The notes beneath the pieces are model-generated. The model saw only the letters and a program-made list of their open reading frames with translations, was not told the DNA's origin and did no database searches. Shown in pieces: positions 9,037 through 42,393 of a stretch of 64,000 nt of DNA. The position numbers and the translations under genes are program-made. The stretch lies in IMG/VR virus record IMGVR_UViG_3300042868_009074, positions 124,001-188,000 of that record. The stretch is one strand, 5' to 3'. Numbering within the stretch: the first letter of the stretch is position 1; the number at the start of each line of letters is the position of its first letter.

Positions 9037-9038
9037 CT

Positions 9039-25802: not shown

Positions 25803-26609
25803 TTAAAGGGAATAATTTTTTGTATTTAATCTATTCCTGTAATCAGAGTTTAAGTTTGGCATCCAGTATTTATATTCACTCTCTTGCCCGACTAACTCTT
25901 CTCGGTCAAAAGATGTACCATAACAAGCTATGCTCAAGTAGGCGTATCTCTGACCTGCTGAGACCGGAAGGACTTCATGTCTACCAATATAACTAGAAGG
26001 ATATATTGCCACTGAGCCCGCTTTTGGTTTCCATACCGTTGGTATATTTGGAAAATGTAATTCTCCGCCAGTATAATTATAGTCGTTTAATTGATCTTCT
26101 GTTTCTACGCAGTCATTTAAGTACAAGTTAATACTAGAGCTATTATGCATTGATACCTGACTACCGGTTGGTTTACCCCATTCGTAAGGGACTTGATCGT
26201 CGCAGTGTTGACCTATTCCTTGCCCGTTTTTATATCCGGCTATGTGACCGTTAGGTCTCCACCAAGAAGTTCCTGCTGCGTCCGGAAAATAACAACAGTA
26301 TTCTACAAGAGCATCATAGATTGCATCTTCTAGTGAATCTATAAAATCTATGTACTTCTGGGGAGCTTCAATGCCTAACTGATTGCCTTTTGTGTCTAAG
26401 AATCTTTCAGGTGCTTTTGCTATATCTGATAAATTAAATTTAAAACCAGTTTTATTAGTGGCGTACTTAATCCCATCTTCTTCATGGTAGGTAAAAGTAC
26501 TTTCTTCATTTTTACGCATCCAACTCATATACTCAAAAAGAAGATCTTGATCTATATTGATTACATTATCAATTATGACCACGCCCATTCCGATGTGTTT
26601 TGATTCCAC
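25803..26609 (-). CDS. 2OG-Fe(II) oxygenase (prolyl-4-hydroxylase-like)
   Basis: HCD...GGELHF...HEV...RY facial triad and 2OG-binding Arg. Confidence 0.85.
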   Translation of the reverse strand: MESKHIGMGVVIIDNVINIDQDLLFEYMSWMRKNEESTFTYHEEDGIKYATNKTGFKFNLSDIAKAPERFLDTKGNQLGIEAPQKYIDFIDSLEDAIYDALVEYCCYFPDAAGTSWWRPNGHIAGYKNGQGIGQHCDDQVPYEWGKPTGSQVSMHNSSSINLYLNDCVETEDQLNDYNYTGGELHFPNIPTVWKPKAGSVAIYPSSYIGRHEVLPVSAGQRYAYLSIACYGTSFDREELVGQESEYKYWMPNLNSDYRNRLNTKNYSL

Positions 26610-26617
26610 GATGTTCC

Positions 26618-27508
26618 TTAGTAGTTGGATTTAGTTATGTAGAATTGAGGAGAATCTTCTTTGTATCCAGATTCTAATAAGTGATTTTTTAGATCTTCTC
26701 TCAGCGTCGGCATATACACATTGGTAGATTTTTTTGATAACTCGGGATCTTTTAATGGGTCTGACACGTATTCATGCACTTCTTGATTAGGAGTCCCTTG
26801 GCTATACCATCCAAGATAACTGTATCTAAATCCCTCTATTACAGGTTTAACTTCATGAGCAGCCATGTAATTGGATGGAAAGAGTAGTACGTCTCCTTTT
26901 TTGGGAGAATAATCTATATCTAAATAATTAAAATAATGATGACCACCCATGTAATTGTTTCCATCTAATTCTTCTTCATTGTCAACGGAATCATTAAAGT
27001 ATACTAAAATACTAATTACATTTCTTAAAGCTAACTGATCTTTTGGTTCCAATACATCGTAAATATAATCAGCACTAGTATCTGAATGAGAACCAAGGTA
27101 AACATTTTTTGGGTATTGAAGAATATGACCTTTGACTTTCCACCATACACATTTGTATGCTAATGGAAATAACTCAAAGTATTGTAGCAAACATTTATCT
27201 TTTGAAGATTCTATAAAAGATAAGAGGTTACGAAGATCATCACTATCACTATAATGGATAGCGCTAGCTCTTTTGGGCATTTGATCTATACTGCTTTTGT
27301 TGAAAAAATAACCACTCTTATTTACATATATTTCTTCGTTAGTTTCAGGGTTAAGTCCAGGAGTGTACATCTCATTCCACTCTTCTTGGATTAGCTCATC
27401 AGATTTCTTGAGTAGATTAACCCAATCTAAGCTTAAGCAATTCTCAAATACTACTACTCCACCACCTAAGTGTTTTGGTTTTACTTTATTAAATATCATT
27501 TTTTTCAA
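26618..27508 (-). CDS. 2OG-Fe(II) oxygenase (prolyl-4-hydroxylase-like)
   Basis: HSD...YMGG...AHEV...RY. Confidence 0.85.
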   Translation of the reverse strand: MKKMIFNKVKPKHLGGGVVVFENCLSLDWVNLLKKSDELIQEEWNEMYTPGLNPETNEEIYVNKSGYFFNKSSIDQMPKRASAIHYSDSDDLRNLLSFIESSKDKCLLQYFELFPLAYKCVWWKVKGHILQYPKNVYLGSHSDTSADYIYDVLEPKDQLALRNVISILVYFNDSVDNEEELDGNNYMGGHHYFNYLDIDYSPKKGDVLLFPSNYMAAHEVKPVIEGFRYSYLGWYSQGTPNQEVHEYVSDPLKDPELSKKSTNVYMPTLREDLKNHLLESGYKEDSPQFYITKSNY

Positions 27509-28424
27509 TTTCTTTATTTGTATTATTGCTTGTTAGGGTTCTTTTTGCTGCTTCGGTTAATAAGTATATTTTTTGCTCATCGTCTTTTGCATACTTTTTT
27601 TCAATTTGATCTAAATAATCATTAACTATTCTAGGCATCCATACTTGACCACTGTCCATTACATCTGATGGATCTCTAATGTTAACACCTTTTTCTATAT
27701 GATTAGAACCCTGTGAAAAGTAACCAACGTATGCATATCTTTCACCCTCTTGACATTCCATGACTTGATGAGTTGCTAAGTAGTTAGAAGGAAACATTAA
27801 TACATCTCCAGATTTTGGAGAATAAGTAAAGTCTGCGTAAGGAAAAACTATTTCTCCGCCTACATAATCATTTTCACTTCTTACTTGATCCAAAGAAGAT
27901 ACAGAGTTATTGAAGTAAATTAATCCACCTAAAACATTTCTTATTGCAAGTTGTTGATCTGGTTCTGCTCCTGGCTGATAGTTGATGTCGTTGTCGCAGT
28001 GTTTTCCAAATCTTCCACCTTTTCCATATCCAACTATATGGCCCTGGGTTCTCCACCATAAACAGGGTAGCATCATAGGATAAAACTCTACATACCTTAG
28101 CATGCAGTAATACAGCACATCTTCGCAAGCTTGAAAAAAGTTATGATACTTTTGATCCAAGCTACCATCAAGAAAATTCATTATATGATTACAGGCTATT
28201 TCTACATCTTCCAATGAATACCTATGGCCACTTCTGTTTACTGCATAAATTGGATCACCAAATTCATCTTTAATAAAAGTAAAATCGTCCTTTAAAGCCT
28301 TAAGTCTTAGTGATCTTGCAAAATCTAGTATGTACTCATGGCTTTCCATCGGAATTACGTTCTTAAAAAGAACAATTCCCATTTTGTGCACTTCTATGTT
28401 TTCTTCTTTAATTTCGAACATCAT
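27489..28424 (-). CDS. 2OG-Fe(II) oxygenase (prolyl-4-hydroxylase-like)
   Basis: HCD...YVGGEI...THQV...RY. Confidence 0.85.
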   Translation of the reverse strand: MMFEIKEENIEVHKMGIVLFKNVIPMESHEYILDFARSLRLKALKDDFTFIKDEFGDPIYAVNRSGHRYSLEDVEIACNHIMNFLDGSLDQKYHNFFQACEDVLYYCMLRYVEFYPMMLPCLWWRTQGHIVGYGKGGRFGKHCDNDINYQPGAEPDQQLAIRNVLGGLIYFNNSVSSLDQVRSENDYVGGEIVFPYADFTYSPKSGDVLMFPSNYLATHQVMECQEGERYAYVGYFSQGSNHIEKGVNIRDPSDVMDSGQVWMPRIVNDYLDQIEKKYAKDDEQKIYLLTEAAKRTLTSNNTNKEIEKNDI

Positions 28425-28510
28425 GGCCCTAGGCTGCCTCTGCTAACTAGACTGTGTGAAATGATTGTTTTTCATCATTGAGTCAATCATTATATGATAC
28501 AGTATAGCGT

Positions 28511-29143
28511 ATGGTTATGCAAATTAAAACAAATCCTGTAAGAATCGCAGAAGAAATATATCAGATCAAGAACTATTTTACGGAAGATGCTTTTGATTTA
28601 TTGTATTCAGATATATCATTAAAAATACTTTCATGCAATAAAGATGAAAATATAACATATCAAGACATTGATTATGAATACTATCCGGAATATAAAAATG
28701 ATAATCCTCCTAAAACTAAAGTTAAAGTACCTTCATCGAGCGTTCACTTTATAGAGCCTTACAAAACCGAATTTTTAAATAAGACGAGAGAAAATTTGTC
28801 TTCAATATATCAAACTACAATATATGAAGAAAAAGATGCTAGTGTAGTTGTATTTTTTCCAGGAGAAGGGATACGAACACACTGGGATGGAAGTGTAGAT
28901 GTGCCTACTTATGGTGGTCATCCACATAGAGATTATAGTAGTGTATTTTATTTTAATGAAGATTTTGAAGGTGGACTTTTACATTTTACAGAGATCAATA
29001 TAAAAATAAAACCTGAGCCAAATATGCTATTACTATTTCCAACCACAATACGCTATTCACATCGTGTTGAAGAAGTTACTTCTGGAATTAGAATGATGAG
29101 TCCATCCTTTTGGTGCTCAGACAAAAAGGACAGAAATATTTAG
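28511..29143 (+). CDS. 2OG-Fe(II) oxygenase (prolyl-4-hydroxylase-like)
   Basis: HWD...YFNEDFEGGLLHF...SHRV...R; one of only two plus-strand genes. Confidence 0.85.
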   Translation: MVMQIKTNPVRIAEEIYQIKNYFTEDAFDLLYSDISLKILSCNKDENITYQDIDYEYYPEYKNDNPPKTKVKVPSSSVHFIEPYKTEFLNKTRENLSSIYQTTIYEEKDASVVVFFPGEGIRTHWDGSVDVPTYGGHPHRDYSSVFYFNEDFEGGLLHFTEINIKIKPEPNMLLLFPTTIRYSHRVEEVTSGIRMMSPSFWCSDKKDRNI

Positions 29144-29937
29144 GGCATTAACTGCTCATTATAGTCCTGCAGACTCAATACATCGTTTCTTATATTTGGA
29201 AGCCATTCAAGATTATCTCCATTGCCAGATGTTCCATCTGCACTTTTTGGTATTCCATAAGCAAAAAATTCTAAAAACACATATCGTGAACCATTTATTA
29301 CAGGAGTGACTTCATGTGTGCCAATATAGTTAGATGGATAGACAACAGCGCTACCTGCCTTAGGCATATAATCTAAGCCTGTATATTTAAATTTTATATG
29401 CCCACCAGTAAAATTCTCACCATTAAGCTGATCTTCATTCTCCACACAGTCGTTAAGGTATAAAGCGCTGCTGAGTGTATTGTGGATTGGGAATTCATTC
29501 TTTGGCATTTCGTCAAACTCAAACTGGATTGTATCATCACAATGAGGACCTATGCCCCTACCATTATTGTAACCTGCTATGTGGCCACTGGTTTTCCACC
29601 ATATAGAGGGAGTAACTTCCGGGTAAAGCAAGCAATACTGCACTACGCATTTATACAGGCCGTCTGTACATGCTTGCATAAATTGTTTTCGCTCTTCAGT
29701 AAGCGTTCTGCCATAGGTGGCAAATCTTTCTGGAGCTTTAAGTACATCGCTTAATTCAAATTTAAAGTTTGTTTTATTTACTGCAGAAGTTATACCATCT
29801 TTTTCTACGTAAGTAAAAATAGTTTCTTCTTTTTCTTGTAGCCATGAAACGTATTCTTTTAAAAATGCTTGATCTACGTTAATAACGTTATCAAATGAAA
29901 CTACTCCACCACCATGATTATGATACTTTATTGACAT
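29140..29937 (-). CDS. 2OG-Fe(II) oxygenase (prolyl-4-hydroxylase-like)
   Basis: HCD...FTGG...THEV...RY; close paralogue of 25803-26609. Confidence 0.85.
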   Translation of the reverse strand: MSIKYHNHGGGVVSFDNVINVDQAFLKEYVSWLQEKEETIFTYVEKDGITSAVNKTNFKFELSDVLKAPERFATYGRTLTEERKQFMQACTDGLYKCVVQYCLLYPEVTPSIWWKTSGHIAGYNNGRGIGPHCDDTIQFEFDEMPKNEFPIHNTLSSALYLNDCVENEDQLNGENFTGGHIKFKYTGLDYMPKAGSAVVYPSNYIGTHEVTPVINGSRYVFLEFFAYGIPKSADGTSGNGDNLEWLPNIRNDVLSLQDYNEQLMP

Positions 29938-31045
29938 ACTGTATATTCACTTCTGGTTGACCATCGCATGCTTTGCCTATCATTTGTTCATTACTACTTG
30001 CGTCTTGTTTATCATTTGATTTTTCTATAGATTCTACATTTGATGTTTCTGCATATTGCACAACGCTTCTAACTTGATAAATAGGATTCCATCCCATTTG
30101 AACACCGCTTTTTTCTATATTTAAATTGCTATACATTGAAAAGGGAGATCTGCAATATAGTTCATAATCATCATAAATATTGTCCATCCAAACAGGAGGG
30201 CACCATTCAAAACTTTCATCTGCTTCTGATATAAGAATGTTTGTTGCAGGTTCGCTTGAACCCTGTCCAAAGAATGTAAGATAAGTATATCTTACTCCAT
30301 CTCCCATTTTCCCTACTTCATGCGCAGCCAAATAGTTTGTTGGGAAAAATATTATATCTCCTTTTTTTGGAACATAAGATACTCCAAGATGAACAAAATT
30401 TAAATGTCCACCCATAAAATTTTTTCCATTCAGTTCTTCTTCTGATTCAACGCAATCATTAAAGTATACTAATGCACCACATGTTTGCCTAGATGCCATC
30501 ATGCCTCTCGGCATGTATCTGATACCCTTACTGACTTTATAGTTAGTATCATTGTCAGCGTGACAACCTAGCACTCCTCCATCGCCGTATCTAAGAATGT
30601 GACCTCTTGTTTTCCACCAGATACTACCCAACATTAGTGGATAGTGATCTATGTATTTTAAAAGAGATTTATATATTTGATCTTCTAAGTAAATGAAAAA
30701 ATCTTTTATCTGTTCAGTACTGTTTGGATTGACTGGAGCAAGAATCCTTATCGGAGTACAGGGGACATCTTTTTCTTCATATTTAAATCCGTCTTCATTA
30801 ATTCCATATCTCTCACCATCATCTCCGGTTACCCATGTCCATCTATTCCTATGTGCTGCTTCAGACTCTGAATCTATATAATCTAAAACTAAATTTTCAT
30901 CCATTTGAAAAGCATTCTTGAGAACAACTATTCCAGGAGCTAAAACTACAGCTTCAAGGCTTCCTATTTCTTTAAGCTCATCTTCTCCTATTGCAGGAGA
31001 AACTGGATAAGCTGTCTTACTACGTCTTTGATCGCCTTCGTTCAT
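29918..31045 (-). CDS. 2OG-Fe(II) oxygenase (prolyl-4-hydroxylase-like)
   Basis: HAD...FMGG...AHEV...RY. Confidence 0.85.
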   Translation of the reverse strand: MNEGDQRRSKTAYPVSPAIGEDELKEIGSLEAVVLAPGIVVLKNAFQMDENLVLDYIDSESEAAHRNRWTWVTGDDGERYGINEDGFKYEEKDVPCTPIRILAPVNPNSTEQIKDFFIYLEDQIYKSLLKYIDHYPLMLGSIWWKTRGHILRYGDGGVLGCHADNDTNYKVSKGIRYMPRGMMASRQTCGALVYFNDCVESEEELNGKNFMGGHLNFVHLGVSYVPKKGDIIFFPTNYLAAHEVGKMGDGVRYTYLTFFGQGSSEPATNILISEADESFEWCPPVWMDNIYDDYELYCRSPFSMYSNLNIEKSGVQMGWNPIYQVRSVVQYAETSNVESIEKSNDKQDASSNEQMIGKACDGQPEVNIQYVNKVS

Positions 31046-31656
31046 CCCAATACCTCATCTATCGCTTCTCTAATCGTCCATCCGGCACCTTGTATTCTTG
31101 GTATTTCGTCTAGTGGCATGTCTTGCCAATTAAATCTTGCAACCATAACTCCATCTTTACTGACCATAAACTTTTCATATCCATGAGGGATTCTAGCTAT
31201 AGCTTGTCCAGCTACATTCTGACCCTTCTGAGCTGCGTCTGATTGGTTTGCAGCGGTGTCAGAGTAGCTTCTCTTTTCGTTGCCCTTTAACGCAGAAAAA
31301 AGAGGATGTTCATTTTTTCCATTTACATCTATTTTTTCAAAAAATGGAAACGTGACAAAAGGGTAGTGCTCTTTTATAAACGCACTTATTTCTTCATTAG
31401 TTCCAGGTTCTGTAGAAGCAAATTGATTACAGGGAAATGCTAAAACAGAGAATCCTCTATCTTTAAATTCATCATGCACTTTTTGAAGCTGCCAAAGCTG
31501 TCTACAAGTTCTGGCATAGGACCAAACTCTTGAACATTGTGGTTCATAGCCTGCTTTGCTGGAAACGTTAACCATCAATGTTAGCTTTCCCTTGTACTTA
31601 GATAGACCGTCTTCTTCACCATCTATAGTTCTAATTGGTATGTTATATATTGACAT
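31042..31656 (-). CDS. Glutathione peroxidase-like protein with atypical active site
   Basis: VNVSSKAG, VLAFPCNQF, FEKIDVNG..EHPLF and EKFMV...VARF GPx motifs. Confidence 0.85.
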   Translation of the reverse strand: MSIYNIPIRTIDGEEDGLSKYKGKLTLMVNVSSKAGYEPQCSRVWSYARTCRQLWQLQKVHDEFKDRGFSVLAFPCNQFASTEPGTNEEISAFIKEHYPFVTFPFFEKIDVNGKNEHPLFSALKGNEKRSYSDTAANQSDAAQKGQNVAGQAIARIPHGYEKFMVSKDGVMVARFNWQDMPLDEIPRIQGAGWTIREAIDEVLG

Positions 31657-31945
31657 TATATGAATCTGCCTTAAAAATCATTTTTGGATATTCGTCTATT
31701 TGCACAGTTCCCATGATGCTATTATATAGAAAGTTACCTTCTATTTTAATAGAAGCTTTTTGTGGTGTGTCAACATTAAATTTTATTTCCAATTTTCCAT
31801 TTTGTAATTTGCCATTATCAAAAATAGCGGAACCCATCTCTGTGGAAATACTACCTGAAACATGTGGAGTTATGGCGTCTAATTTAAGATTATAGTTTTC
31901 ATCACCAAACGGCGTATCTATCACCATTTTCCATTCACCAATCAT
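31643..31945 (-). CDS. Hypothetical small beta-rich protein
   Basis: 100-aa ORF starting IGEWKMVIDTPFG; overlaps the GPx start. Confidence 0.6.
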   Translation of the reverse strand: MIGEWKMVIDTPFGDENYNLKLDAITPHVSGSISTEMGSAIFDNGKLQNGKLEIKFNVDTPQKASIKIEGNFLYNSIMGTVQIDEYPKMIFKADSYNVNI

Positions 31946-32002
31946 ATGATCCTCACATTAATTTTACTAAGGTTTATATTATACTACAAAACCAAAACAT
32001 TT

Positions 32003-32764
32003 TTATTCTACAAAAAATAATTTCTCCTCATAGCCTGAAGGAGGGTCGTCTTTATGCCATACATTAATTCCAACTATAAATCTTTGACTATTTTCACCAC
32101 TTGGAGTAGTACCATGTAATATGCGTCCTGCGTCAAAATATACAACTCTATTAGGCCTATAGGTAATGATATCTCTTTTGCCAATTGGTTTATAGTATTT
32201 TTTTAAATGAGTCATTGTATATGGATCTTCTTCCGTAGTTAATAATACATATTCTTTTACTACATCTACGTCTACCCTGCCGGGGTGAATTTCCAAAACA
32301 CCAGGATATACATTCTCGTCCACCTCAAAATGCGCATAGTATACTGCTCCTATCATCGGGCATCTAAATTCACCATTTTTTTCGTAGACAAAGGTATCTT
32401 CGTCTAAATGAGTTGGAAGAAACTGGCCGGGATTATAAGTTCTTGTCCAATATTCAAAACCAACTATCTCATCCAAATCGCAAGGTAAGTTATCTTCCCA
32501 TATAGCTTTAACTAATCTTTTCTTTACAGTATCGCATGGGCTTCTCCACCAACCATCCCAAAACATCCAAGGAGAAAATACGGAAGCGTTATCATTATGA
32601 TAGATATTTCCAGTTTTTAATTGCCTTGGACTTTCACCCATAGACGCAGGAAAAAAAGTAGGATCGTTTTCTATGTCTTTGAGAAGCTCTTCATCTTTGA
32701 TGTAATCATCAATTATAACTATTGAATTTTGAGCTTTTTTAATTTTAGGATTTTGATATTCCAT
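32003..32764 (-). CDS. 2OG-Fe(II) oxygenase family protein
   Basis: FEYWTR...HLDED...LHGT...RF. Confidence 0.75.
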   Translation of the reverse strand: MEYQNPKIKKAQNSIVIIDDYIKDEELLKDIENDPTFFPASMGESPRQLKTGNIYHNDNASVFSPWMFWDGWWRSPCDTVKKRLVKAIWEDNLPCDLDEIVGFEYWTRTYNPGQFLPTHLDEDTFVYEKNGEFRCPMIGAVYYAHFEVDENVYPGVLEIHPGRVDVDVVKEYVLLTTEEDPYTMTHLKKYYKPIGKRDIITYRPNRVVYFDAGRILHGTTPSGENSQRFIVGINVWHKDDPPSGYEEKLFFVE

Positions 32765-32766
32765 AT

Positions 32767-33432
32767 TTACTCATAGTGGAATTCATTTAAAGAAAGAGCC
32801 AATGGTGGATTATCTTTATGCCAAACATTTATAATCATCACTTGTCTAATCCCAGAATTTGCTGGAGTGGTATTATGTATAACGTGACCAGCATCTAGTA
32901 TTATTAATCTATTTCCTTTGTAGGCTATTCTTTCTCTTTCTTCCACAGGAGATATCTTAATGTTTTCTTTTTCTAAAGCTTCATGCGATCGATCAATTAA
33001 GGTGTGTTTGTGAATTTCCAAAAATCCACCATCTGTGTTTTCGCATCCGTATAATATTGCGCCATTTATTGGGCCGGTAAACACTTTATCCCTAGCATAA
33101 AGGAAAGTGTCTTCATCCACGTGTGTCGTAAGAAATTGTCCAGCCCTGTATGTTCTTGTCCAATATTCAAAACCAAGTATATCGTCATGCTGGTATTCTA
33201 ATCGACTACCCCATATACTTTGTATTATTTGTTTCTTTAATGTATTAGCTGGACTGTTCCACCAACCGTCCCAGAACATATATGGTGCGTAGCAGCTTGC
33301 TTGCTCGTAGTGGTAGCTATTGAGCTCTGTAGCTATTTGGTCTCCACTACCCATTGATTCAGGATAAAAGTTAGGATCTTTTAGCATCTTTGAATAAAGA
33401 TCTTTGTTTAAAAAATTATCTAATACAATCAT
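32767..33432 (-). CDS. 2OG-Fe(II) oxygenase family protein (tandem paralogue of 32003-32764)
   Basis: FEYWTR...HVDED...IHNT...RQ; both carry MFWDGWW.SP. Confidence 0.75.
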   Translation of the reverse strand: MIVLDNFLNKDLYSKMLKDPNFYPESMGSGDQIATELNSYHYEQASCYAPYMFWDGWWNSPANTLKKQIIQSIWGSRLEYQHDDILGFEYWTRTYRAGQFLTTHVDEDTFLYARDKVFTGPINGAILYGCENTDGGFLEIHKHTLIDRSHEALEKENIKISPVEERERIAYKGNRLIILDAGHVIHNTTPANSGIRQVMIINVWHKDNPPLALSLNEFHYE

Positions 33433-33461
33433 TTTTTATTCCATCTATTGCGATTAAATCG

Positions 33462-34643
33462 CTAATTATTAATACTTGGAGAAACATAGACGTATAGATC
33501 CATTCTAAGTTCTGGATTTGTTACCATTGACTTTTTAAGTACGTCGGTAATACTATTGTTTGCTTCTACGTAAGATGGAACAAAGGCTTTAATAAACATT
33601 TCTTGAATATCTACAGTTTTTGGATCTAAACTATTTTCTATACAAAATTTATATATTATTGATTCAAATAATTCATTTTCTTTATCTAAGAATAATTGTG
33701 GGATTGATGGAGACAATGGATGAATAGAAGATAAAGATCCTAAAGTTCTATATCTTAAAGTTGAAATAAACCAATTTTTAAAATTAGGAGGAAGAATTTG
33801 ATCTTCTTCTATTTTTCTTCTTGGGTCAGGGTCATTGCTTAAGTATCGTTCTAGTACAGTAGGGAAACTAAACTCTTCCATCTCCGTAATAATTTCATCT
33901 GAAAAATCAAGGTCTACCATTGCTTGATTACATTTTACTGGAAGTGAGGTTGTATTATTCCATGGATCATTGGCGCATTTAGACCAATGATATGCTGTCT
34001 TTAAAGCTCCAAATAGAGTTCTGCATATTCCCCCACAACCTGGCCAATTTATATATGCAGAATCGGGAATGTTTTTAAATGTAACCTTAGCAATGTGTAT
34101 ATTACCAACTGAATTAATTAAAGAGACGTGAGATATTAAATTGTCGGCAGTAAAATATGATATATCCAAAAGGGGTCCTGGTACCCCATTGGTTATGGTC
34201 ATGTCGTGAAAACCTATAGCTCCATATTCCTCTAGGTCGCATCTTCCAGCTTGTATGTCAAGAAAAAAGTTTTTCCATTCTGGGTCATTCAGCAGCGTAT
34301 CATAGTTTTCTATCAGTTTTGCAGCGGAGTTAAAAATCATAAATAAACTTTTATCTTTTTCATAATAACCGTCTATTATATCTGTTAACCATTCATAATT
34401 TTGATGATTAATTTTTTCAGTTTTATTATCTGAAATAACATAATATGTAAAATTGTTTTTAAAAACACCCAAATGAAAAAATGCAATTAAGGTTTGATCA
34501 CCAATATCATATAAATCATATTCGGTATATTCCATAAACCCACTAGGGTAAAGGAGATTTATTGTGAAATCATCCTTAATACTGGTTATAGCATAGGCAG
34601 CATAGTTGCTTGGATCATATTCTTCGTGCGCCTTGATTTGCAT
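33462..34643 (-). CDS. Hypothetical protein
   Basis: 393-aa ORF; no recognised motif. Confidence 0.6.
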   Translation of the reverse strand: MQIKAHEEYDPSNYAAYAITSIKDDFTINLLYPSGFMEYTEYDLYDIGDQTLIAFFHLGVFKNNFTYYVISDNKTEKINHQNYEWLTDIIDGYYEKDKSLFMIFNSAAKLIENYDTLLNDPEWKNFFLDIQAGRCDLEEYGAIGFHDMTITNGVPGPLLDISYFTADNLISHVSLINSVGNIHIAKVTFKNIPDSAYINWPGCGGICRTLFGALKTAYHWSKCANDPWNNTTSLPVKCNQAMVDLDFSDEIITEMEEFSFPTVLERYLSNDPDPRRKIEEDQILPPNFKNWFISTLRYRTLGSLSSIHPLSPSIPQLFLDKENELFESIIYKFCIENSLDPKTVDIQEMFIKAFVPSYVEANNSITDVLKKSMVTNPELRMDLYVYVSPSINN

Positions 34644-34655
34644 TTTAACTCCTAG

Positions 34656-34877
34656 TTACAGTAAAGATATCTTATTGTCTATCTCTTTTATCTTATAGAT
34701 TATATCATAGATGTCTTTTTCAGCTGTGCTATTTTCAGCGGGGATGAAGCTGTCTTCATCAAACTCTTCTAGATCTATGTTTAGTATTGACAGTCTTAAA
34801 ATTAAAGCTTTTTCAAGTTCTGTTTTCACTAATTGATATGCTTCTTTTTTTTGTTCAGAAGATAGGCTAAATCGCAT
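34656..34877 (-). CDS. Small acidic hypothetical protein
   Basis: 73 aa; shares L.ID...FDE.SF with the adjacent ORF. Confidence 0.6.
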   Translation of the reverse strand: MRFSLSSEQKKEAYQLVKTELEKALILRLSILNIDLEEFDEDSFIPAENSTAEKDIYDIIYKIKEIDNKISLL

Positions 34878-34879
34878 GC

Positions 34880-35143
34880 TTATACTTCTAGACTTGCAAT
34901 TTCCTGTTTAATAATATTTAGAGCATCTAAACCCTTTTTTAATCGCCCACGTGCACCTACTACTCTTAGGTCACTTAAATCAATAGATGGATCTTCTTCT
35001 TCAAAACTGTTCTCATCAAATGTTACTGGGTCAATTTCCAGCACTATAAGAGCTTCATAGATATCCTTTTCATGTTTTGGGATATTTTCTTGCAATATTT
35101 CTAATTTAGTGCTTTTGTCTACATTGTTAAAGAGCATAACCAT
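34880..35143 (-). CDS. Small acidic hypothetical protein
   Basis: 87 aa; LEIDPVTFDENSF. Confidence 0.6.
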   Translation of the reverse strand: MVMLFNNVDKSTKLEILQENIPKHEKDIYEALIVLEIDPVTFDENSFEEEDPSIDLSDLRVVGARGRLKKGLDALNIIKQEIASLEV

Positions 35144-35182
35144 TCCTTTGGATTCTGGACATATATCACATATAGTACCAAA

Positions 35183-35917
35183 TTATTTTGTAAATTTACC
35201 ATTTTTTGTATCATCTGAAAATGGCTCAGCAAGTTTGATCAGCCCATCATGCTTTGGCCCAATTTGGTTACCGTTTTCATCTAGCCCACTTCTAATGCCG
35301 TTCATCCAAGTCCAAGGTTGTTCGTGAAGCTTTTTCATTTTTGCGTCGCCGTATGATTGACGTTTGGCCATTAGTTCTGGCTTATCCCAAAGATTCTCAA
35401 CTACTACTTCTGTATTCTCTAGAAGATCATTGTTGTATATATTAAAGAACATAAATGGCATTCCTGCTTCAAATCTAACTGGTTCTCCAATTTTAGTAAT
35501 TTTCCAATTCATATTAAATTCATCTGGCCACCAGGAGCTTGGTATGGTTGCTGATAGTGGAGCTGCGCCATCTACAAAATAATTTGGAGATCCTGATATC
35601 CAGGTGTCGTAACCTTCTTCGGTGTTGATGGCCCATCCTGTTGCAAAAGAAATAATCCCAATTATAGATGGAATTACCACTGGTCTTCCATCTAAGAATT
35701 CTCCCTCTAAAACTCTAGGAGTTGTATTTCCGCCATCCCATTGAACTACTACATCCTGTTGCAATATCAGTTCCCAACCATTTACATTAGCTGCAGACAT
35801 GGGCAAACACTTATAAGCGTGCTTGTTGTAGGTTTCGTCCATCCAATCTCTCTTGAGTCTAGATTGTTGTATCTTTGGTGGATTTTGATGAGTTTTAGTT
35901 AATGTTATTTTCGTCAT
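35183..35917 (-). CDS. DUF6065-like protein
   Basis: RDWMD...HAYKCLPM..AN..GW and F.MNWKIT..G..V.FE.G.PF pattern. Confidence 0.6.
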   Translation of the reverse strand: MTKITLTKTHQNPPKIQQSRLKRDWMDETYNKHAYKCLPMSAANVNGWELILQQDVVVQWDGGNTTPRVLEGEFLDGRPVVIPSIIGIISFATGWAINTEEGYDTWISGSPNYFVDGAAPLSATIPSSWWPDEFNMNWKITKIGEPVRFEAGMPFMFFNIYNNDLLENTEVVVENLWDKPELMAKRQSYGDAKMKKLHEQPWTWMNGIRSGLDENGNQIGPKHDGLIKLAEPFSDDTKNGKFTK

Positions 35918-37322
35918 ACTCTTCTTCTAGAAATTGTTCTATAACTTTTTTAATGTTTGCCAATGCGTCCTCAGGGGATGTACTTCTATTTCCACTGCTG
36001 TATGCTAAGTCTAATAAATCTGAATTACAAAATCTAACATACTTACTTCCATCTTTGGATACGATAAATTTCTCAAAATTTCCATTAATTACATTACTAT
36101 TTTTTTGTAATTCTTTAAAAAGCGGATGCATATCTCCCTTTGGCTGACGAAAATCTATGTCAGTTTTATCGTGCTCTTCTCTTACTCTTTTATAGGCTTC
36201 TTTATCTTGGTTTGGATCTAAAATATTAACCATCTCAGAAAATGGAAAATCTGTATTATAAAGTTTTACCATATGATCTTTCATATTCTCGGCACTAGTG
36301 TTAGAGTCAGCAAACTCTCCATAGGCATCTTGGCAAAAATCTGTACTAGGGAGAGCTAAAGCTTCAAATCCCAAATCTTTATATTGATTGTAGATATCTT
36401 GAATAATTGTATACTGAGGAGAGTTTGCGCATTCTCCGGTTACGTTGAATAGTATAGAAACTTTTCCTTTAAGATTTGCTAAGATCCCATCTTCTCCATC
36501 TATGGATTTAAGTGGAAAATCATATATGTTATTATCTACATGTTCTACAAATGATTCTTCTGAATTTTGATTCATTTTTTCTCCTTTTATTATATTATTT
36601 TGTATAAATAAGTCAAGATCATCAGGCGTACCCATACCATGCATAGCATTTACTTTATGCGAAATGATTAATTTTTGATCTCCTATAGCCTCATTGTATA
36701 CCGGGCATATGTAAAATTCGTCATTTGTTCTAATATTTTTTTGTATCATTTTATTAGCGTATTTAACATAATCTGAACCTTTTTTCCAGAAGTATATACC
36801 ACAAGTAGCTTCATTGCTAATTACATCTTTTTCTGCAACTGCGTCAATAGTTCCAAAATCATTATTTTTAACGTAAGACCATTTGGGATCGGAATTTTCA
36901 AATGTTAATATTCCTCCATCTATGCCTTTTAGTATAAAATTGTTGATTATGAGATTAATATCATCGTCTATGTATTGATCAATATTTGCTATAACTAGAT
37001 GATCATTATTATCTATTAAGTCTTTTGCTAGCAAGCTAGATGATACTGCGCCGGGTAGCTTGCCATTTTGTATAATAATTTTACCTTGATTTACATGCTT
37101 ATGAATCAATTCTGCAATGTTATATAAATCTTGGTCTTCTTTTCTAACTATGAATATATATTCTGCTTCAATGCCAATATTTTCTATAACTATTTCTATC
37201 ATCGTTTTATTATTTATTTTAATCATTGGCTTGATATCTTTATAGCCAGCATCTTTAAATCTAGAACCTTCTCCAGCCATTGGTATCAAGACTTTAATTT
37301 TTTGCTTTTGTTCATTATTCAT
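35895..37322 (-). CDS. Sugar-phosphate nucleotidyltransferase-like domain in frame with a glutathione-peroxidase-like domain (internal start at 36575)
   Basis: N-terminal LIPMAGEGSRFK...KPMI and GMGTPDDL. C-terminal FNVTGECAN, ALPSTDFC and NGNFEKFIV. AAAGGAG sits 6 nt before the in-frame ATG at 36575. Confidence 0.75.
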   Translation of the reverse strand: MNNEQKQKIKVLIPMAGEGSRFKDAGYKDIKPMIKINNKTMIEIVIENIGIEAEYIFIVRKEDQDLYNIAELIHKHVNQGKIIIQNGKLPGAVSSSLLAKDLIDNNDHLVIANIDQYIDDDINLIINNFILKGIDGGILTFENSDPKWSYVKNNDFGTIDAVAEKDVISNEATCGIYFWKKGSDYVKYANKMIQKNIRTNDEFYICPVYNEAIGDQKLIISHKVNAMHGMGTPDDLDLFIQNNIIKGEKMNQNSEESFVEHVDNNIYDFPLKSIDGEDGILANLKGKVSILFNVTGECANSPQYTIIQDIYNQYKDLGFEALALPSTDFCQDAYGEFADSNTSAENMKDHMVKLYNTDFPFSEMVNILDPNQDKEAYKRVREEHDKTDIDFRQPKGDMHPLFKELQKNSNVINGNFEKFIVSKDGSKYVRFCNSDLLDLAYSSGNRSTSPEDALANIKKVIEQFLEEEYDENNIN

Positions 37323-37330
37323 AATAGTAT

Positions 37331-38623
37331 TTAAATAATTTCTTGATTGTTTAATATTTCAACTGATAAATCTTTCCAGTCAGCTTGAATGATAGTATAC
37401 CAATTTCCAGTTTTAATGTAATTTAAATATTTGTCTAGTGTATTAACACGAGTTGGATTAAAGAAAATTCTAAACTTTTGATCATCAAAAGGATGAGCAA
37501 TTTCTATTATTTTTGTTTTTTTATCAGCAAAAATAGCGTTACATAATCCACTTCCTTGAAGACTAATTATTGTATTAGAATTTTGAATTAAGCTTATTTG
37601 TTCAATATAACTTAATTCTTCAAAGAAAACTTTTTTAATTTGTTTTTCTTTTTTATTAAAAATAGTTTTTAACAAATCTATAAACTTATTTTCGTCTAAT
37701 ATTGTTCTATCAAGATATGTTTTACACGTATTAAGAAAATCTTTTGGGTTAATTGTTTCTTGTTCTAACATTTTTTTAAAATCTTCATTAAACTTATTTG
37801 AATAATTTTCTCTAGAAATATACAATACATCAATTTTTTGATCAAATTTATTAATGTATTTTTTATGCCTATTTACCATAAGGGATAAACCAAATAGGCA
37901 AGTTTCGTAGCCTGGGAATGTAAATGGAAATTCTATATCAGCATCTACATAATCTTGGACTAAAGATCTTGAAGCCCTGTAGTACCTTGTCATTTCTGAC
38001 ATATTTGACATTTTATCTCCAGAAACTAATTTTACAAGATTAAATTTTTTATCTATTTCATCAGATATTAAAGCATTATCGTCATGTATGATGTACACTT
38101 CTTCTATAAGTACATTTTCTTCACCATTAGAAAAAATGTCTTCATTATTTAAATTAAATTCCTTTTTATATATATCAAATATGCCTTTATGGTAAGCATG
38201 GTCGTGATGGTCAAATATAAAAAATGGTTTTATTTCACTATCAAAATCATTAAGTGTTTCAAATTGACTATAGAATTCAGTAAATCCATGGAATATAGGA
38301 GTAAAAGCTAAGACTACAAATCTTTTACCACTAACTACTCTTGTTGGATAATCATTTTCTTCTACGCAATTTTGATTTCTGTTTTCTCCTTCTTTAAATG
38401 ATTTTATTAATAAATTTTTTAATTTTAATATTTGAAATTTATTTTTTGATTCATATTTTTGATCTTCATCTAAAGTAATTGTAATTTCATGGTCAATAAA
38501 TTCAACATTTTCACAGTCAACTGCAATTTGAGCAGTTGTGTATTGAATGTTTCTAGTAAATTTGCTAGGAATTTTTTCAATTTTATTTGTATCAAATATA
38601 TAAAAATAAAAATCATTTTCCAA
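37331..38623 (-). CDS. GT61 (DUF563-like) glycosyltransferase
   Basis: LYISRE...R.I...FEELSYIEQISLIQNSNTIISLQGSGLCNAIF....IIEI C-terminal signature. Confidence 0.7.
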   Translation of the reverse strand: MENDFYFYIFDTNKIEKIPSKFTRNIQYTTAQIAVDCENVEFIDHEITITLDEDQKYESKNKFQILKLKNLLIKSFKEGENRNQNCVEENDYPTRVVSGKRFVVLAFTPIFHGFTEFYSQFETLNDFDSEIKPFFIFDHHDHAYHKGIFDIYKKEFNLNNEDIFSNGEENVLIEEVYIIHDDNALISDEIDKKFNLVKLVSGDKMSNMSEMTRYYRASRSLVQDYVDADIEFPFTFPGYETCLFGLSLMVNRHKKYINKFDQKIDVLYISRENYSNKFNEDFKKMLEQETINPKDFLNTCKTYLDRTILDENKFIDLLKTIFNKKEKQIKKVFFEELSYIEQISLIQNSNTIISLQGSGLCNAIFADKKTKIIEIAHPFDDQKFRIFFNPTRVNTLDKYLNYIKTGNWYTIIQADWKDLSVEILNNQEII

Positions 38624-38624
38624 T

Positions 38625-39311
38625 TTAATCAGCCTTTAATAGAGTTGGCAGTGGTGCCGTTTCAATTCCAGAAGAAGGTGTTTTTGATTGGCCAATTTCA
38701 TTATAGTTATACATTGTAACTGCACTATATTTAGTGCCTTTAGTTACTTCCATTGATCCATGTGCATAGATATAGGTTGAAGGAAAGAATATGACATCTC
38801 CCTTTTGAGCTTTAAATTTAAGGTTTAGATAAGGGAACCAAAGCTCTCCTCCTTCATAGTCATCATTGAAGAATCCGACTGAAGAAAGTGTGCAAAAGTA
38901 TGAAAAACCTGAATCTGTATGGACTTGGAAGTGCTGACCTTCTCCGTACTTTATGAAGTTAATTGCTTCCATAAACTCCATCTTAAAATTATATCTTCTT
39001 TCATAATCCGCTAAGCAAGTCTCTAAGATAGAGTTATAGTCATCATAAACATTCTTAATCTCAGATAGTTCTTCTGGAAGATGGTCCCAGTGCTTTGGTC
39101 CTATTTTTAAATCATAGCAATCTCTATACTCTGGCATTTTTTCGTTATATCCAACCATAGCTTCATTCCATTTAAAATAATCATGGTCACTATCAACAAG
39201 AGTGTCTTCTAGTCTTTTAGGAATGTTAACGCCGTCTGGTACTGCGTTTCTGTAGAGTATTACTCCTAATTTTGGGTCTTCTATATTAAAAATTTCCAAT
39301 TCAATCTCCAA
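38625..39311 (-). CDS. 2OG-Fe(II) oxygenase (prolyl-4-hydroxylase-like)
   Basis: HTD...FFNDDYEGGELWF...AHGS...KY. Confidence 0.85.
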   Translation of the reverse strand: MEIELEIFNIEDPKLGVILYRNAVPDGVNIPKRLEDTLVDSDHDYFKWNEAMVGYNEKMPEYRDCYDLKIGPKHWDHLPEELSEIKNVYDDYNSILETCLADYERRYNFKMEFMEAINFIKYGEGQHFQVHTDSGFSYFCTLSSVGFFNDDYEGGELWFPYLNLKFKAQKGDVIFFPSTYIYAHGSMEVTKGTKYSAVTMYNYNEIGQSKTPSSGIETAPLPTLLKAD

Positions 39312-39338
39312 TTTATTACTAGCTTGCTAGTTCTGTCA

Positions 39339-39347
39339 TGATATACT
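39339..39347 (+). promoter_or_regulatory. Extended -10-like element TGATATACT in the divergent intergenic region
   Basis: Upstream of the plus-strand oxygenase at 39400; the same 9-mer occurs at 53658-53666 on the minus strand. Confidence 0.45.
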
Positions 39348-39399
39348 TTACCATAGCGTTTATTGAATAGTCAAATTTTGAAAATATGAGAGGCAAAAT

Positions 39400-40020
39400 A
39401 TGGAACAGTCACTCGTTCAACCAGGCCATTTTGGTAATTCTGTTAACAATATAAAAGTAATTGATAATTTTATAGAGCTAGATGATCTTAAGATTGTACA
39501 AAAATTTTTGCCCACCATCAACGAATGGATGGATGCCGGAGAGAATCAATATGCAGATGATGGAACTTGTATCTATGATGCCTCTTACTGGGCAAATAGG
39601 CAATGTAGTTGGGATATTCTTCAGAGAATTAATATTCAAGTTTATAATATAATTGATAAATACATTGAAAAAATGAAACAATTTTTAGAACAATCTTTTA
39701 ATGTCGGTCTATCTACTAGGCCTCCAGTGATAATTAAATGGCGTCCTGGCATGGAACAAAGACCACATGCAGATAAGCAAACTAATGACGGTAAACCAAA
39801 TCCTTTTCCAACTTATGATATAAATTCATTGTTTTATTATAATGATAATTTTCAAGGTGGAGAATTATACTATCCCGACCATGATTTAACTGTAGTTCCA
39901 AAACCTGGCTTAGCTGTTGCTCATCCTGGAGATATCAATTATCTACACGGAGTCAAGCAAGTTGTCTCTGGAGAAAGATATACTACTCCATCTTTTTATA
40001 CCATTACTGAGTTAAAGTAA
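39400..40020 (+). CDS. 2OG-Fe(II) oxygenase (prolyl-4-hydroxylase-like)
   Basis: HAD...YYNDNFQGGELYY...LHGV...RY. Confidence 0.85.
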   Translation: MEQSLVQPGHFGNSVNNIKVIDNFIELDDLKIVQKFLPTINEWMDAGENQYADDGTCIYDASYWANRQCSWDILQRINIQVYNIIDKYIEKMKQFLEQSFNVGLSTRPPVIIKWRPGMEQRPHADKQTNDGKPNPFPTYDINSLFYYNDNFQGGELYYPDHDLTVVPKPGLAVAHPGDINYLHGVKQVVSGERYTTPSFYTITELK

Positions 40021-42381: not shown

Positions 42382-42393
42382 AGTAGATCTCTT

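Follow-up and report, generated by a model that had tools for sequence, protein, structure and literature searches.

What use could a phage make of ten 2-oxoglutarate (2OG)/Fe(II) oxygenases encoded close together next to its fibre genes? The question is raised by an island at positions 25803-40020 of a 64,000-nucleotide stretch of DNA (the window), which corresponds to bases 124001-188000 of the 267,766-bp IMG/VR virus record IMGVR_UViG_3300042868_009074, rated 100% complete. Comparison with related loci indicated that the island is this phage's copy of a late-region module common to a broad group of uncultured, largely freshwater phages, in which tandem genes for enzymes resembling prolyl 4-hydroxylases (P4H) accompany genes for fibres with proline-rich repeats.

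The virus carrying the island is a giant phage from lake water. It is a myovirus, with the tail sheath, the major head protein, the portal and the large terminase all recognised; the portal is distantly akin to that of the Bacillus phage 0305phi8-36 group (30-39% identity). The stretch 35183-40020 was present almost in full in 20 lake-water metagenome runs, so the virus is real, recurrent and of fresh water, and not an assembly artefact. No DNA-level match of the island to cultured phages was found by megablast, and a distant blastn search with the fibre/capsid stretch 40027-48000 returned merely short fibre and collagen matches.

The oxygenase array and the neighbouring fibre genes

All ten open reading frames (ORFs) singled out by the sequence-only reading for an HxD...H triad with an additional Arg or Lys, in at least three subgroups, were found in the island, and the subgroups numbered exactly three. 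Each ORF keeps HxD...H, followed about 10 residues on by a basic residue, which is Arg in nine of them and Lys in 38625-39311. All-against-all BLAST separated five long proteins (group A, 30-48% identical), three short and loosely related ones (group B) and a pair (group C, 38% identical). Family PF13640 was passed by seven of the ten ORFs in hmmscan and by eight in the scan of the genome, with 39400-40020 borderline against the curated cut-off of 27 bits; the whole genome holds two further PF13640 genes outside the window. The oxygenase genes and the adjoining fibre genes are:

25803-26609, minus strand: group A 2OG/Fe(II) oxygenase, 268 residues; PF13640 38.3 bits; HCD...H...R; 48% identical to 29140-29937
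26618-27508, minus strand: group A oxygenase, 296 residues, the structure-modelled member; PF13640 45.2 bits; pLDDT 92
27489-28424, minus strand: group A oxygenase, 311 residues; PF13640 36.9 bits; orthologues in relatives 55-57% identical
28511-29143, plus strand: group B oxygenase, 210 residues; PF13640 40.9 bits; HWD...H...R
29140-29937, minus strand: group A oxygenase, 265 residues; PF13640 38.0 bits; 15 related viral loci
29918-31045, minus strand: group A oxygenase with a C-terminal extension, 375 residues; PF13640 34.0 bits; orthologues in relatives 61-85% identical
32003-32764, minus strand: group C probable 2OG oxygenase, 253 residues; without a Pfam match; H119, D121, H217 and R228 invariant
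32767-33432, minus strand: group C probable 2OG oxygenase, 221 residues; PF13640 19.3 bits, below threshold; 38% identical to 32003-32764
38625-39311, minus strand: group B oxygenase nearest to collagen-type P4H, 228 residues; PF13640 39.8 bits
39400-40020, plus strand: group B oxygenase, 206 residues; PF13640 26.6 bits in hmmscan and 28.4 in the genome scan; phrog_61 2OG-Fe(II) oxygenase, E 2.9e-14
40027-42381, minus strand: collagen-like fibre, candidate substrate, 784 residues; PF01391 63.6 bits; a run of 31 G-X-Y triplets
42394-42850, minus strand: (Y/F)FPP-repeat gene, candidate substrate, repeat and leader ORF, 151 residues given a +1 shift at GTA CGG A
42931-45057, minus strand: fibre or virion structural protein, 708 residues; phrog_6002 virion structural protein, phrog_24210 tail fibre

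The iron triad was invariant in alignments A1, A3 and A4, and so was the basic residue (R228, K194 and R228, respectively). In the case of 38625-39311, H131, D133, H184 and K194 did not vary across 27 orthologues. Group C was called probable 2OG oxygenases on account of the invariant H119, D121, H217 and R228 and of its ESM-Atlas neighbours, which were viral 2OG dioxygenases with PF13640 in 21 of 30. A profile search of the PDB with group C found nothing, and hhalign of group C against group B (probability 11%, E 0.0027) gave an alignment confined to the HxD region, too weak a basis for claiming kinship.

The P4H-like character of the enzymes, also proposed from the sequence, gained support from two sides. 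By sequence, 38625-39311 matched the solved P4H of Bacillus anthracis with E 3.5e-5. By structure, the model of the group A protein 26618-27508 adopted a double-stranded beta-helix fold and gave 339 PDB matches at E <= 0.001, prolyl hydroxylases leading. The top Foldseek matches comprised a PiuC/YbiX-type oxygenase, the viral collagen prolyl hydroxylase vCPH of PBCV-1 (5c5t), the P4Hs of B. anthracis and Chlamydomonas, and human PHD2, along with Dictyostelium (6t8m) and Pseudomonas prolyl hydroxylases. The TM scores of the model against vCPH, BaP4H, Cr-P4H and PHD2 ranged by target from 0.54 to 0.71, at an identity of just 13-19%. By sequence this protein had 330 metagenomic homologues, with no informative names among them.

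Among 50,697 cultured-phage records, only 217 (0.4%) matched 38625-39311; almost all are cyanomyovirus records, with identities of 24-34%. Against this frequency, the presence of ten oxygenases within 14 kb argues that the array did not arise by chance.

A single group A protein used as the query retrieved 15 related viral contigs. In the seven relatives that were mapped, the array occupies the corresponding place, with fibre genes on one side and neck/sheath genes on the other, just as the island of the window lies between the fibre/capsid and neck/sheath genes. Its presence there in relatives of 50-80% identity makes it a conserved module rather than a recent insertion; the sequence-only reading was right about the position and wrong in taking the island as inserted there. 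The window paralogues each have their own orthologue in the relatives (50-85% identity, compared with 25-48% among the paralogues themselves), and hence the duplications are old. The set kept in the relatives comprises two group B genes by the fibre, a gene of the DUF6065 family, group C, a 100-residue ORF, the first glutathione peroxidase (GPx)-like gene and group A. Their variable slots hold a cytochrome P450, a WS/DGAT-like acyltransferase, a TauD-family dioxygenase and 2OG-FeII_Oxy_5 (L004 2711-5229, L004 7390-7995 and L008 10776-11609).

Both proline-rich neighbours named by the sequence-only reading, the collagen-like and the PPxF gene, flank the array directly, and the FPP-repeat protein 42394-42744 as called reads (YFPP)9(FFPP)6. 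The linkage was followed further by searching IMG/VR for DNA encoding FPP(F/Y)FPP(F/Y)FPP(F/Y)FPP. At least 120 contigs matched and 110 loci had a clear FPP ORF. Many of these loci are interrelated, so that the counts do not represent independent events, and the local profiles missed divergent oxygenases, which makes the oxygenase counts lower bounds. A P4H-like oxygenase ORF was present in the fetched stretch of 78 of the 110 FPP loci, with up to 11 per locus and a median distance of 352 nt between the FPP ORF and the nearest oxygenase ORF. Of the 22 loci flanked by at least 3 kb in both directions, 19 had oxygenases, 16 had DUF6065 and 19 had the fibre C-terminal domain; this domain of the collagen-like fibre 40027-42381 recurred in the array-side fibres of 73 of the 110 loci. 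When 31 whole contigs of the 32 oxygenase-free loci were scanned, PF13640 was found elsewhere in 21, and the ten negative contigs were fragments, estimated as 4-31% complete. In total, at least 99 of 109 FPP contigs carried P4H-like oxygenases. The arrays are usually the next genes downstream of FPP and consist of 2-15 tandem paralogues with DUF6065 among them. Orthologues of 38625-39311 and 39400-40020 are the oxygenases most frequent beside the FPP genes. The loose HxD...H...R/K pattern was found in all 170 unique oxygenase ORFs near FPP genes.

The same arrangement was seen in four genomes of 109-154 kb, estimated as at least 97% complete, with 7-15 PF13640 genes each. The FPP gene lies upstream of the same-strand array, directly adjacent in three of them and about 2.3 kb off in G032, and DUF6065 lies within the array. 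The complete G032 genome (154,192 bp, with direct terminal repeats) has FPP-coding DNA at 11-162 and 153977-154182, inside or next to the terminal repeat, and its 12-gene oxygenase array about 2.3 kb from the right end. The major capsid protein of the phage studied here had no detectable homologue in these four genomes. Nor was a portal homologue found in G028, G032 and G035 with a query that retrieved the orthologues of close relatives at E 1e-219. The module is thus common to phages that seem unrelated in their core structural genes.

Loci anchored on DUF6065 gave a concordant picture. Among 46 loci with at least 5 kb upstream, taken from the best 80 of at least 579, group B oxygenases were present in all 46 and an FPP gene in 43, and the remaining three had collagen-like fibres of the G-P-T type at that place. 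Collagen-like repeats occurred in just five of the 46. In four array-bearing relatives no PF01391 match was detected anywhere on the contigs, and the fibre homologues were without G-X-Y runs; each of the four has one or two (F/Y)FPP-repeat genes directly after the fibre gene. The conserved partner of the arrays is therefore the proline-repeat fibre, mostly of the FPP kind rather than collagen. Co-occurrence across phages, named by the sequence-only reading as a check for both repeats, thus extended for FPP over about 100 contigs, including lineages with no detectable homologue of the capsid or portal protein studied here; collagen proved not to be a conserved partner.

The FPP repeat was found in a small protein, C-terminal to fibronectin type III domains and within fibre-size proteins of 900-1,500 residues. 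It also lies between Cys-rich modules, and in front of Hint-type domains that match weakly (L029, L049, L051, L090, L109, L034, L036 and L092). In these architectures it behaves like a module that serves surface proteins as stalk or linker. Many FPP proteins begin with a similar short leader, 'MA...K..G..S...NDFLEP'. A literature search turned up nothing on DUF6065 or on phage FFPP repeats.

Companion genes of the array

Interleaved with the oxygenases are the GT61 glycosyltransferase, the nucleotidyltransferase, the DUF6065 gene and the two GPx-like domains recognised earlier from the sequence, all of which Pfam confirmed:

31042-31656, minus strand: GPx-fold protein without the peroxidase tetrad, 204 residues; PF00255 100.8 bits
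31643-31945, minus strand: conserved ORF of 100 residues; no family match; homologues at the same place in relatives
33462-34643, minus strand: ORF of 393 residues; no family match; homologues 37-41% identical, in the closest relatives only
34656-35143, minus strand: two small tandem ORFs, 73 and 87 residues; no family match; homologues adjoin DUF6065 in relatives
35183-35917, minus strand: DUF6065 protein with a dUTPase-like beta-barrel, 244 residues; PF19541 154.6 bits
35895-37322, minus strand: sugar-phosphate nucleotidyltransferase (residues 1-245) fused to a GPx-like domain (about 265-475); PF00483 43.2 and PF00255 45.9 bits
37331-38623, minus strand: GT61 glycosyltransferase, 430 residues; PF04577 48.1 bits

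DUF6065 is the most faithful companion of the oxygenase arrays. Its model (pLDDT 88, 44 homologues) consists of a dUTPase-type beta-barrel with a C-terminal helix. The fold was matched with VIA Z 10.7, all 13 chains at Z >= 8 belonging to the dUTPase fold group, and with Foldseek E 2e-5. No dUTPase Pfam family matched at E <= 0.01, and neither dUTPase motifs nor the catalytic Asp were found. The residues invariant among the 44 homologues (R23, W25, M26, H33, A34, Y35, C37, P39, N44, G47, N112 and G220) include no acidic one. DUF6065 was also considered as an eleventh oxygenase, which was ruled out by the fold being dUTPase-like rather than of the cupin/double-stranded beta-helix type.

Relatives of DUF6065 are encoded by at least 579 IMG/VR viral contigs and the family is mostly viral. 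Its bacterial members (five genomes, 31-34% identical) have the unrelated neighbours RNase D, Ppx/PPK and GST, and no oxygenases. Five contigs (L229-L233) encoding proteins 65-75% identical to that of the window were placed in metagenome-assembled genomes of four phyla (Acidibacter, Cyclobacteriaceae, Gammaproteobacteria and Verrucomicrobiales). They are probably mis-binned phage contigs, and hence no host was assigned.

The GPx-like proteins had been read as peroxidases protecting the Fe(II) enzymes, which found no support. In comparison with solved GPx, all four catalytic residues of 31042-31656 are replaced (Cys by Ala, Gln by Thr, Trp by His and Asn by Gly). None of its 19 homologues has Cys at the peroxidatic position; six residues further on, a Cys is invariant. 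The GPx half of 35895-37322 has Cys and Asn in all 18 members and a second invariant Cys; its Trp is always Gly and its Gln is lost. With these catalytic residues lost, the two proteins are not ordinary peroxidases, and their sequences characterise them as conserved thioredoxin-fold proteins with cysteines.

Scoring 48.1 bits (cut-off 27), the GT61 match extends over positions 41-137 of the 137-position model. Relatives of this protein are few: 13 in 5.8 billion proteins, all 55-97% identical. The two with fetched context occupy the same island position as in the window, and there GT61 is followed by a gene for a HAD-phosphatase with NTP_transferase, a small ORF, a separate GPx-like gene and DUF6065. 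Unlike in these two, the nucleotidyltransferase of the window is fused to the resident GPx-like gene. The best solved match of the nucleotidyltransferase half of 35895-37322 was 4evw, an NDP-sugar pyrophosphorylase. This half had no match in any FPP locus; the homologues present in other loci, encoded as a gene of their own, correspond to the GPx half only. The seven mapped relatives lack GT61, the nucleotidyltransferase and the 393-residue ORF, which lie in the part of the window with the lowest GC content (0.28). None of the 110 FPP loci and none of the 77 DUF6065 loci had GT61, and neither GT61 nor DUF6065 had a match among the cultured-phage records. This absence, together with the count of only 13 relatives, marks glycosylation as a late add-on of a small sub-lineage. 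The fixed position of GT61 within the module in the two relatives lends mild support to a functional tie with the oxygenases.

What the oxygenases may act on

The module comprises tandem P4H-type paralogues (ten here, 2-15 elsewhere), one DUF6065 protein and one or two GPx-derived thioredoxin-fold proteins, encoded directly downstream of proline-rich-repeat fibre genes that are usually (F/Y/H)FPP arrays and in this sub-lineage also (GPT)n collagen. Gene content, fold and linkage make hydroxylation of the proline-rich repeats of the neighbouring fibres by the array oxygenases the preferred reading, one that we are about evenly inclined to believe and to doubt. What was observed directly within this explanation is the gene content, the intact catalytic triads, the P4H-like fold and the recurrent gene linkage. 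The modified residue would most likely be proline, hydroxylated in the infected cell before or during fibre assembly, and separate paralogues might serve separate sequence contexts or ring positions. By analogy with hydroxyproline in collagen and plant extensins, the modification could change how stiff, stable or sticky the fibre stalks are. A few close relatives share with this genome the inserted NDP-sugar/GT61 cassette, which may put a sugar on the modified fibre. The conserved cysteines of the GPx-like proteins suggest a thiol-based helper, for example one that would keep iron reduced without ascorbate, which is the weakest step of the proposal. From the sequence-only reading this explanation retains the P4H-like enzymes and the PPxF link, and drops the collagen partner, the peroxidase protection and the insertion. 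The pathway of hydroxylation followed by a glycan comes out weakened: GT61 and the nucleotidyltransferase are there, but they are lineage-specific.

The nearest known viral counterpart is vCPH (A085R) of PBCV-1, a virus-encoded P4H of the monomeric type. PBCV-1 is reported also to encode proline-rich repeats, hydroxylated by its P4H in vitro (Eriksson 1999). It differs in having one P4H gene instead of a tandem array, with a sequence identity of about 13-19%. Here, unlike in PBCV-1, (F/Y)FPP or (GPT)n fibre repeats are encoded beside the enzymes, DUF6065 and GPx-like proteins are partners, and the host is bacterial. The T4-like cyanomyoviruses likewise have several PF13640-type copies per genome; the phage lineage differs, having here a portal related to that of the 0305phi8-36 group, and so does the tandem array fixed beside FPP fibres with DUF6065.

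A further parallel is the B. anthracis P4H with the collagen-like BclA: of the solved proteins this P4H is nearest in sequence to 38625-39311, which likewise binds 2OG through Lys, and the neighbouring fibre has G-X-Y repeats. Animal collagen P4H works with a thioredoxin-fold partner, the protein disulfide isomerase (PDI), and thioredoxin-fold GPx-like genes lie within the array here, although a partnership of this kind is conjecture. In contrast to both the B. anthracis and the animal systems, collagen repeats are not a conserved neighbour of the arrays, the other nine paralogues use Arg, and there is no PDI homologue. Plant extensins and Skp1 of Dictyostelium and Toxoplasma provide examples of prolyl hydroxylation followed by O-glycosylation by dedicated transferases, and the Dictyostelium enzyme is among the structural matches. 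The differences are that GT61 is limited here to a small sub-lineage and that there is no haem peroxidase; a sugar on hydroxyproline is conjecture. To our knowledge, GT61 is not among the transferase families of the extensin or Skp1 pathways.

Several points speak against hydroxylation of the fibre repeats. An unpublished analysis listed in a Chlorovirus review is said there to have found virions without hydroxyproline in the case of the PBCV-1 P4H. Ten to 15 paralogues is a lot for one simple repeat. The P450, TauD-family and WS/DGAT-like genes in the relatives' variable slots are of types usually acting on small molecules. Accessory genes commonly land near fibre genes, and a second FPP gene lies far from the array in several genomes. 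The relatedness of many loci also reduces what the linkage counts can carry.

The principal alternative, which we regard as rather unlikely, is that the enzymes are host-directed accessory proteins that hydroxylate host translation factors or ribosomal proteins, or consume 2OG so as to reshape host physiology, a role also suggested for the several 2OG oxygenases of cyanomyoviruses, with the fibre-side place acting as a tolerant insertion hotspot. The nearest cultured-phage homologues, the cyanophage 2OG-Fe(II) oxygenases, fit this picture; roles in nitrogen-stress/2OG physiology and DNA repair have been proposed for them. Bacterial P4H-type enzymes hydroxylating EF-Tu are among the structural matches of group A, and the island content differs between relatives. 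A hotspot leaves two observations unexplained, namely the same-strand FPP/array adjacency in phages with no detectable homologue of the capsid or portal studied here and the proline-repeat fibre gene upstream in all 46 DUF6065 loci.

Small-molecule or lipid/envelope chemistry is less probable still. In that case the array, together with the P450, TauD-family and acyltransferase genes and here with GT61 and the nucleotidyltransferase, would alter a metabolite or a cell-surface glycan. The nucleotide-sugar enzyme next to a glycosyltransferase in this island, the DUF6065 fold of the nucleotide-binding type and the contents of the variable slots (2OG-FeII_Oxy_5 included) would all suit such chemistry. 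However, genes of the small-molecule type form the variable and not the conserved part of the island, the conserved core enzymes group with protein prolyl hydroxylases and not with small-molecule families, and the FPP and DUF6065 loci elsewhere are devoid of GT61.

Modification of DNA or RNA bases, with TET/JBP- or AlkB-like hydroxylation followed by glycosylation of the phage genome, appears very improbable. The known logic of phage DNA hypermodification, an oxygenase with a glycosyltransferase and a sugar-activating enzyme, is matched by the enzyme set of the island, and PHROG families hit by groups B and C are labelled 'DNA endonuclease'. Those hits are weak, though, and the same proteins match the 2OG oxygenase PHROG better; no Tet_JBP or AlkB-type Pfam family matched any island ORF at E <= 0.01, the fold matches listed for the group A model were protein hydroxylases, with no TET/JBP or AlkB enzyme in the list, and nearly all arrays are without GT61. 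Equally hard to credit is that the paralogues are non-catalytic structural or binding components of the virion: they are encoded in the structural region on the late strand, but the iron- and 2OG-binding residues are kept in all 170 copies, which would be unexpected after loss of catalysis.

P4H genes have been reported among the more abundant 'auxiliary' genes of aquatic viromes, and a recent virome survey concluded that their viral use 'remains cryptic'. The locus described here, with its roughly 100 relatives, gives viral P4H genes a concrete and testable candidate substrate, the adjacent (F/Y)FPP and collagen-type fibre repeats. If hydroxylation of these repeats is the true function, hydroxyproline-based structural polymers would include phage fibres besides collagen and extensins, with a bearing on host recognition and particle stability in lakes, and the arrays would supply bacterial-compatible hydroxylases for the engineering of proline-rich materials.

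Junctions at CGG_A in the FPP gene and the large terminase

Gene calling placed the start of the FPP gene at a TTG (42744), which leaves the gene truncated. A leader of 42 codons begins with an ATG at 42850; it is colinear with the N-terminus of the G001 homologue, which is contiguous in that relative. The repeat is in the +1 frame relative to the leader, with the junction at GTA CGG A (CGG at 42736-42734); if the C is skipped, a protein of 151 residues results. Among 72 unique small FPP genes, 12 are contiguous, and in 53 the leader and the repeat differ in frame by one base. CGG stands in the leader frame, where both frames are open, in 48 of the 53, with A following it in 44. No indel at the FPP junction was seen in contigs of four lake runs, including a strain with 13 substitutions per 186 bases. 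A -1 slip on an A-run upstream of the FPP gene in relatives was rejected, as it leads to a stop after a few codons.

CGG was not used once among 13,271 codons in 20 long genes of the window, and it accounts for 19 of 2,317 Arg codons in the long ORFs of the genome. The genome has 14 tRNA genes, two of which are tRNA-Gly(UCC), reading GGA, and none reads CGG. All tRNA genes lie outside the window, at genome positions 8972-13530, 30190-58710 and 222732-250572; those for Leu(UAA), Asn, Lys, Met, Arg(UCU) and Gly(UCC) are each doubled, near opposite ends of the record.

At tight +1 junctions genome-wide, CGGA was the most enriched of 244 quadruplets (8 seen versus 0.51 expected, p = 7e-8) and ranked above the start-codon and ribosome-binding-site words of ordinary gene boundaries. 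This test replaced a loose genome-wide count of ORF extensions upon quadruplet reading, which was undiscriminating (CGGA 16 versus a median of 9 and a maximum of 27). The reading of CGGA as G was applied just to genes where the genome itself shows it. Beside the FPP site, the junctions are:

window 60300 (terminase), 57401, 50182 and 18150; genome 257703, 114757 and 94503: CGG_A junctions

The large terminase (59088-60951, minus strand) is split at CGGA between Walker A and Walker B, as read from its translation. With the shift it has 620 residues, and the Terminase_6N match crosses the junction with 33.4 bits, compared with 17.2 for the N-terminal half. Its orthologues are contiguous in G002 and G004 and split at the same place, also at CGGA, in G001. 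For the gene 48571-50308, the window and three relatives have the CGGA split at residue 42/43, and the genes 17238-18282 and 56483-57488 are contiguous in relatives. On the evidence of these sequences, the FPP gene, the large terminase and at least six other genes appear to need a +1 frameshift at CGG_A. Since the zero-frame product of the FPP gene is merely a short leader, the shift must be efficient.

A precedent is provided by the mitochondria of glass sponges, where +1 shifts occur at CGG_(A)/UGG_(A), with an extremely rare zero-frame codon before GGA read in the +1 frame. The NNN CGG A motif is the same; the difference is that here it is found in a phage and in at least eight genes, including the large terminase. 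The Ty3 type of shift is similar in the rare zero-frame codon at the junction, the +1 codon being read instead. Structural genes of Listeria phage PSA undergo +1 frameshifting as well, but on CCC and not on CGG. A literature search found no phage precedent for the CGG_A shift. Standard gene callers split the terminase and other genes at CGG_A, and marker-gene and completeness analyses can thus be misled.

Combined with the array, the shift leads to a broader proposal, which we put forward tentatively and consider doubtful in its entirety. A widespread, undescribed phage system would mature fibre stalks in the manner of extensins. Up to 15 hydroxylase paralogues, aided by rewired GPx-fold thiol proteins and the dUTPase-fold DUF6065, would hydroxylate the (F/Y)FPP and collagen-type repeats of receptor-binding fibres, with glycosylation in some lineages. 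Synthesis of the substrate would be gated by an efficient +1 shift at CGG, a signal also present in the terminase and other essential genes.

A scan for promoters and terminators revealed no difference in counts from shuffled sequences (88 versus 83 and 15 versus 10, respectively). Downstream of the tail genes, the window contains two adjacent giant ORFs on the minus strand, 2821-9036 (2,071 residues) and 9039-15980 (2,313 residues).

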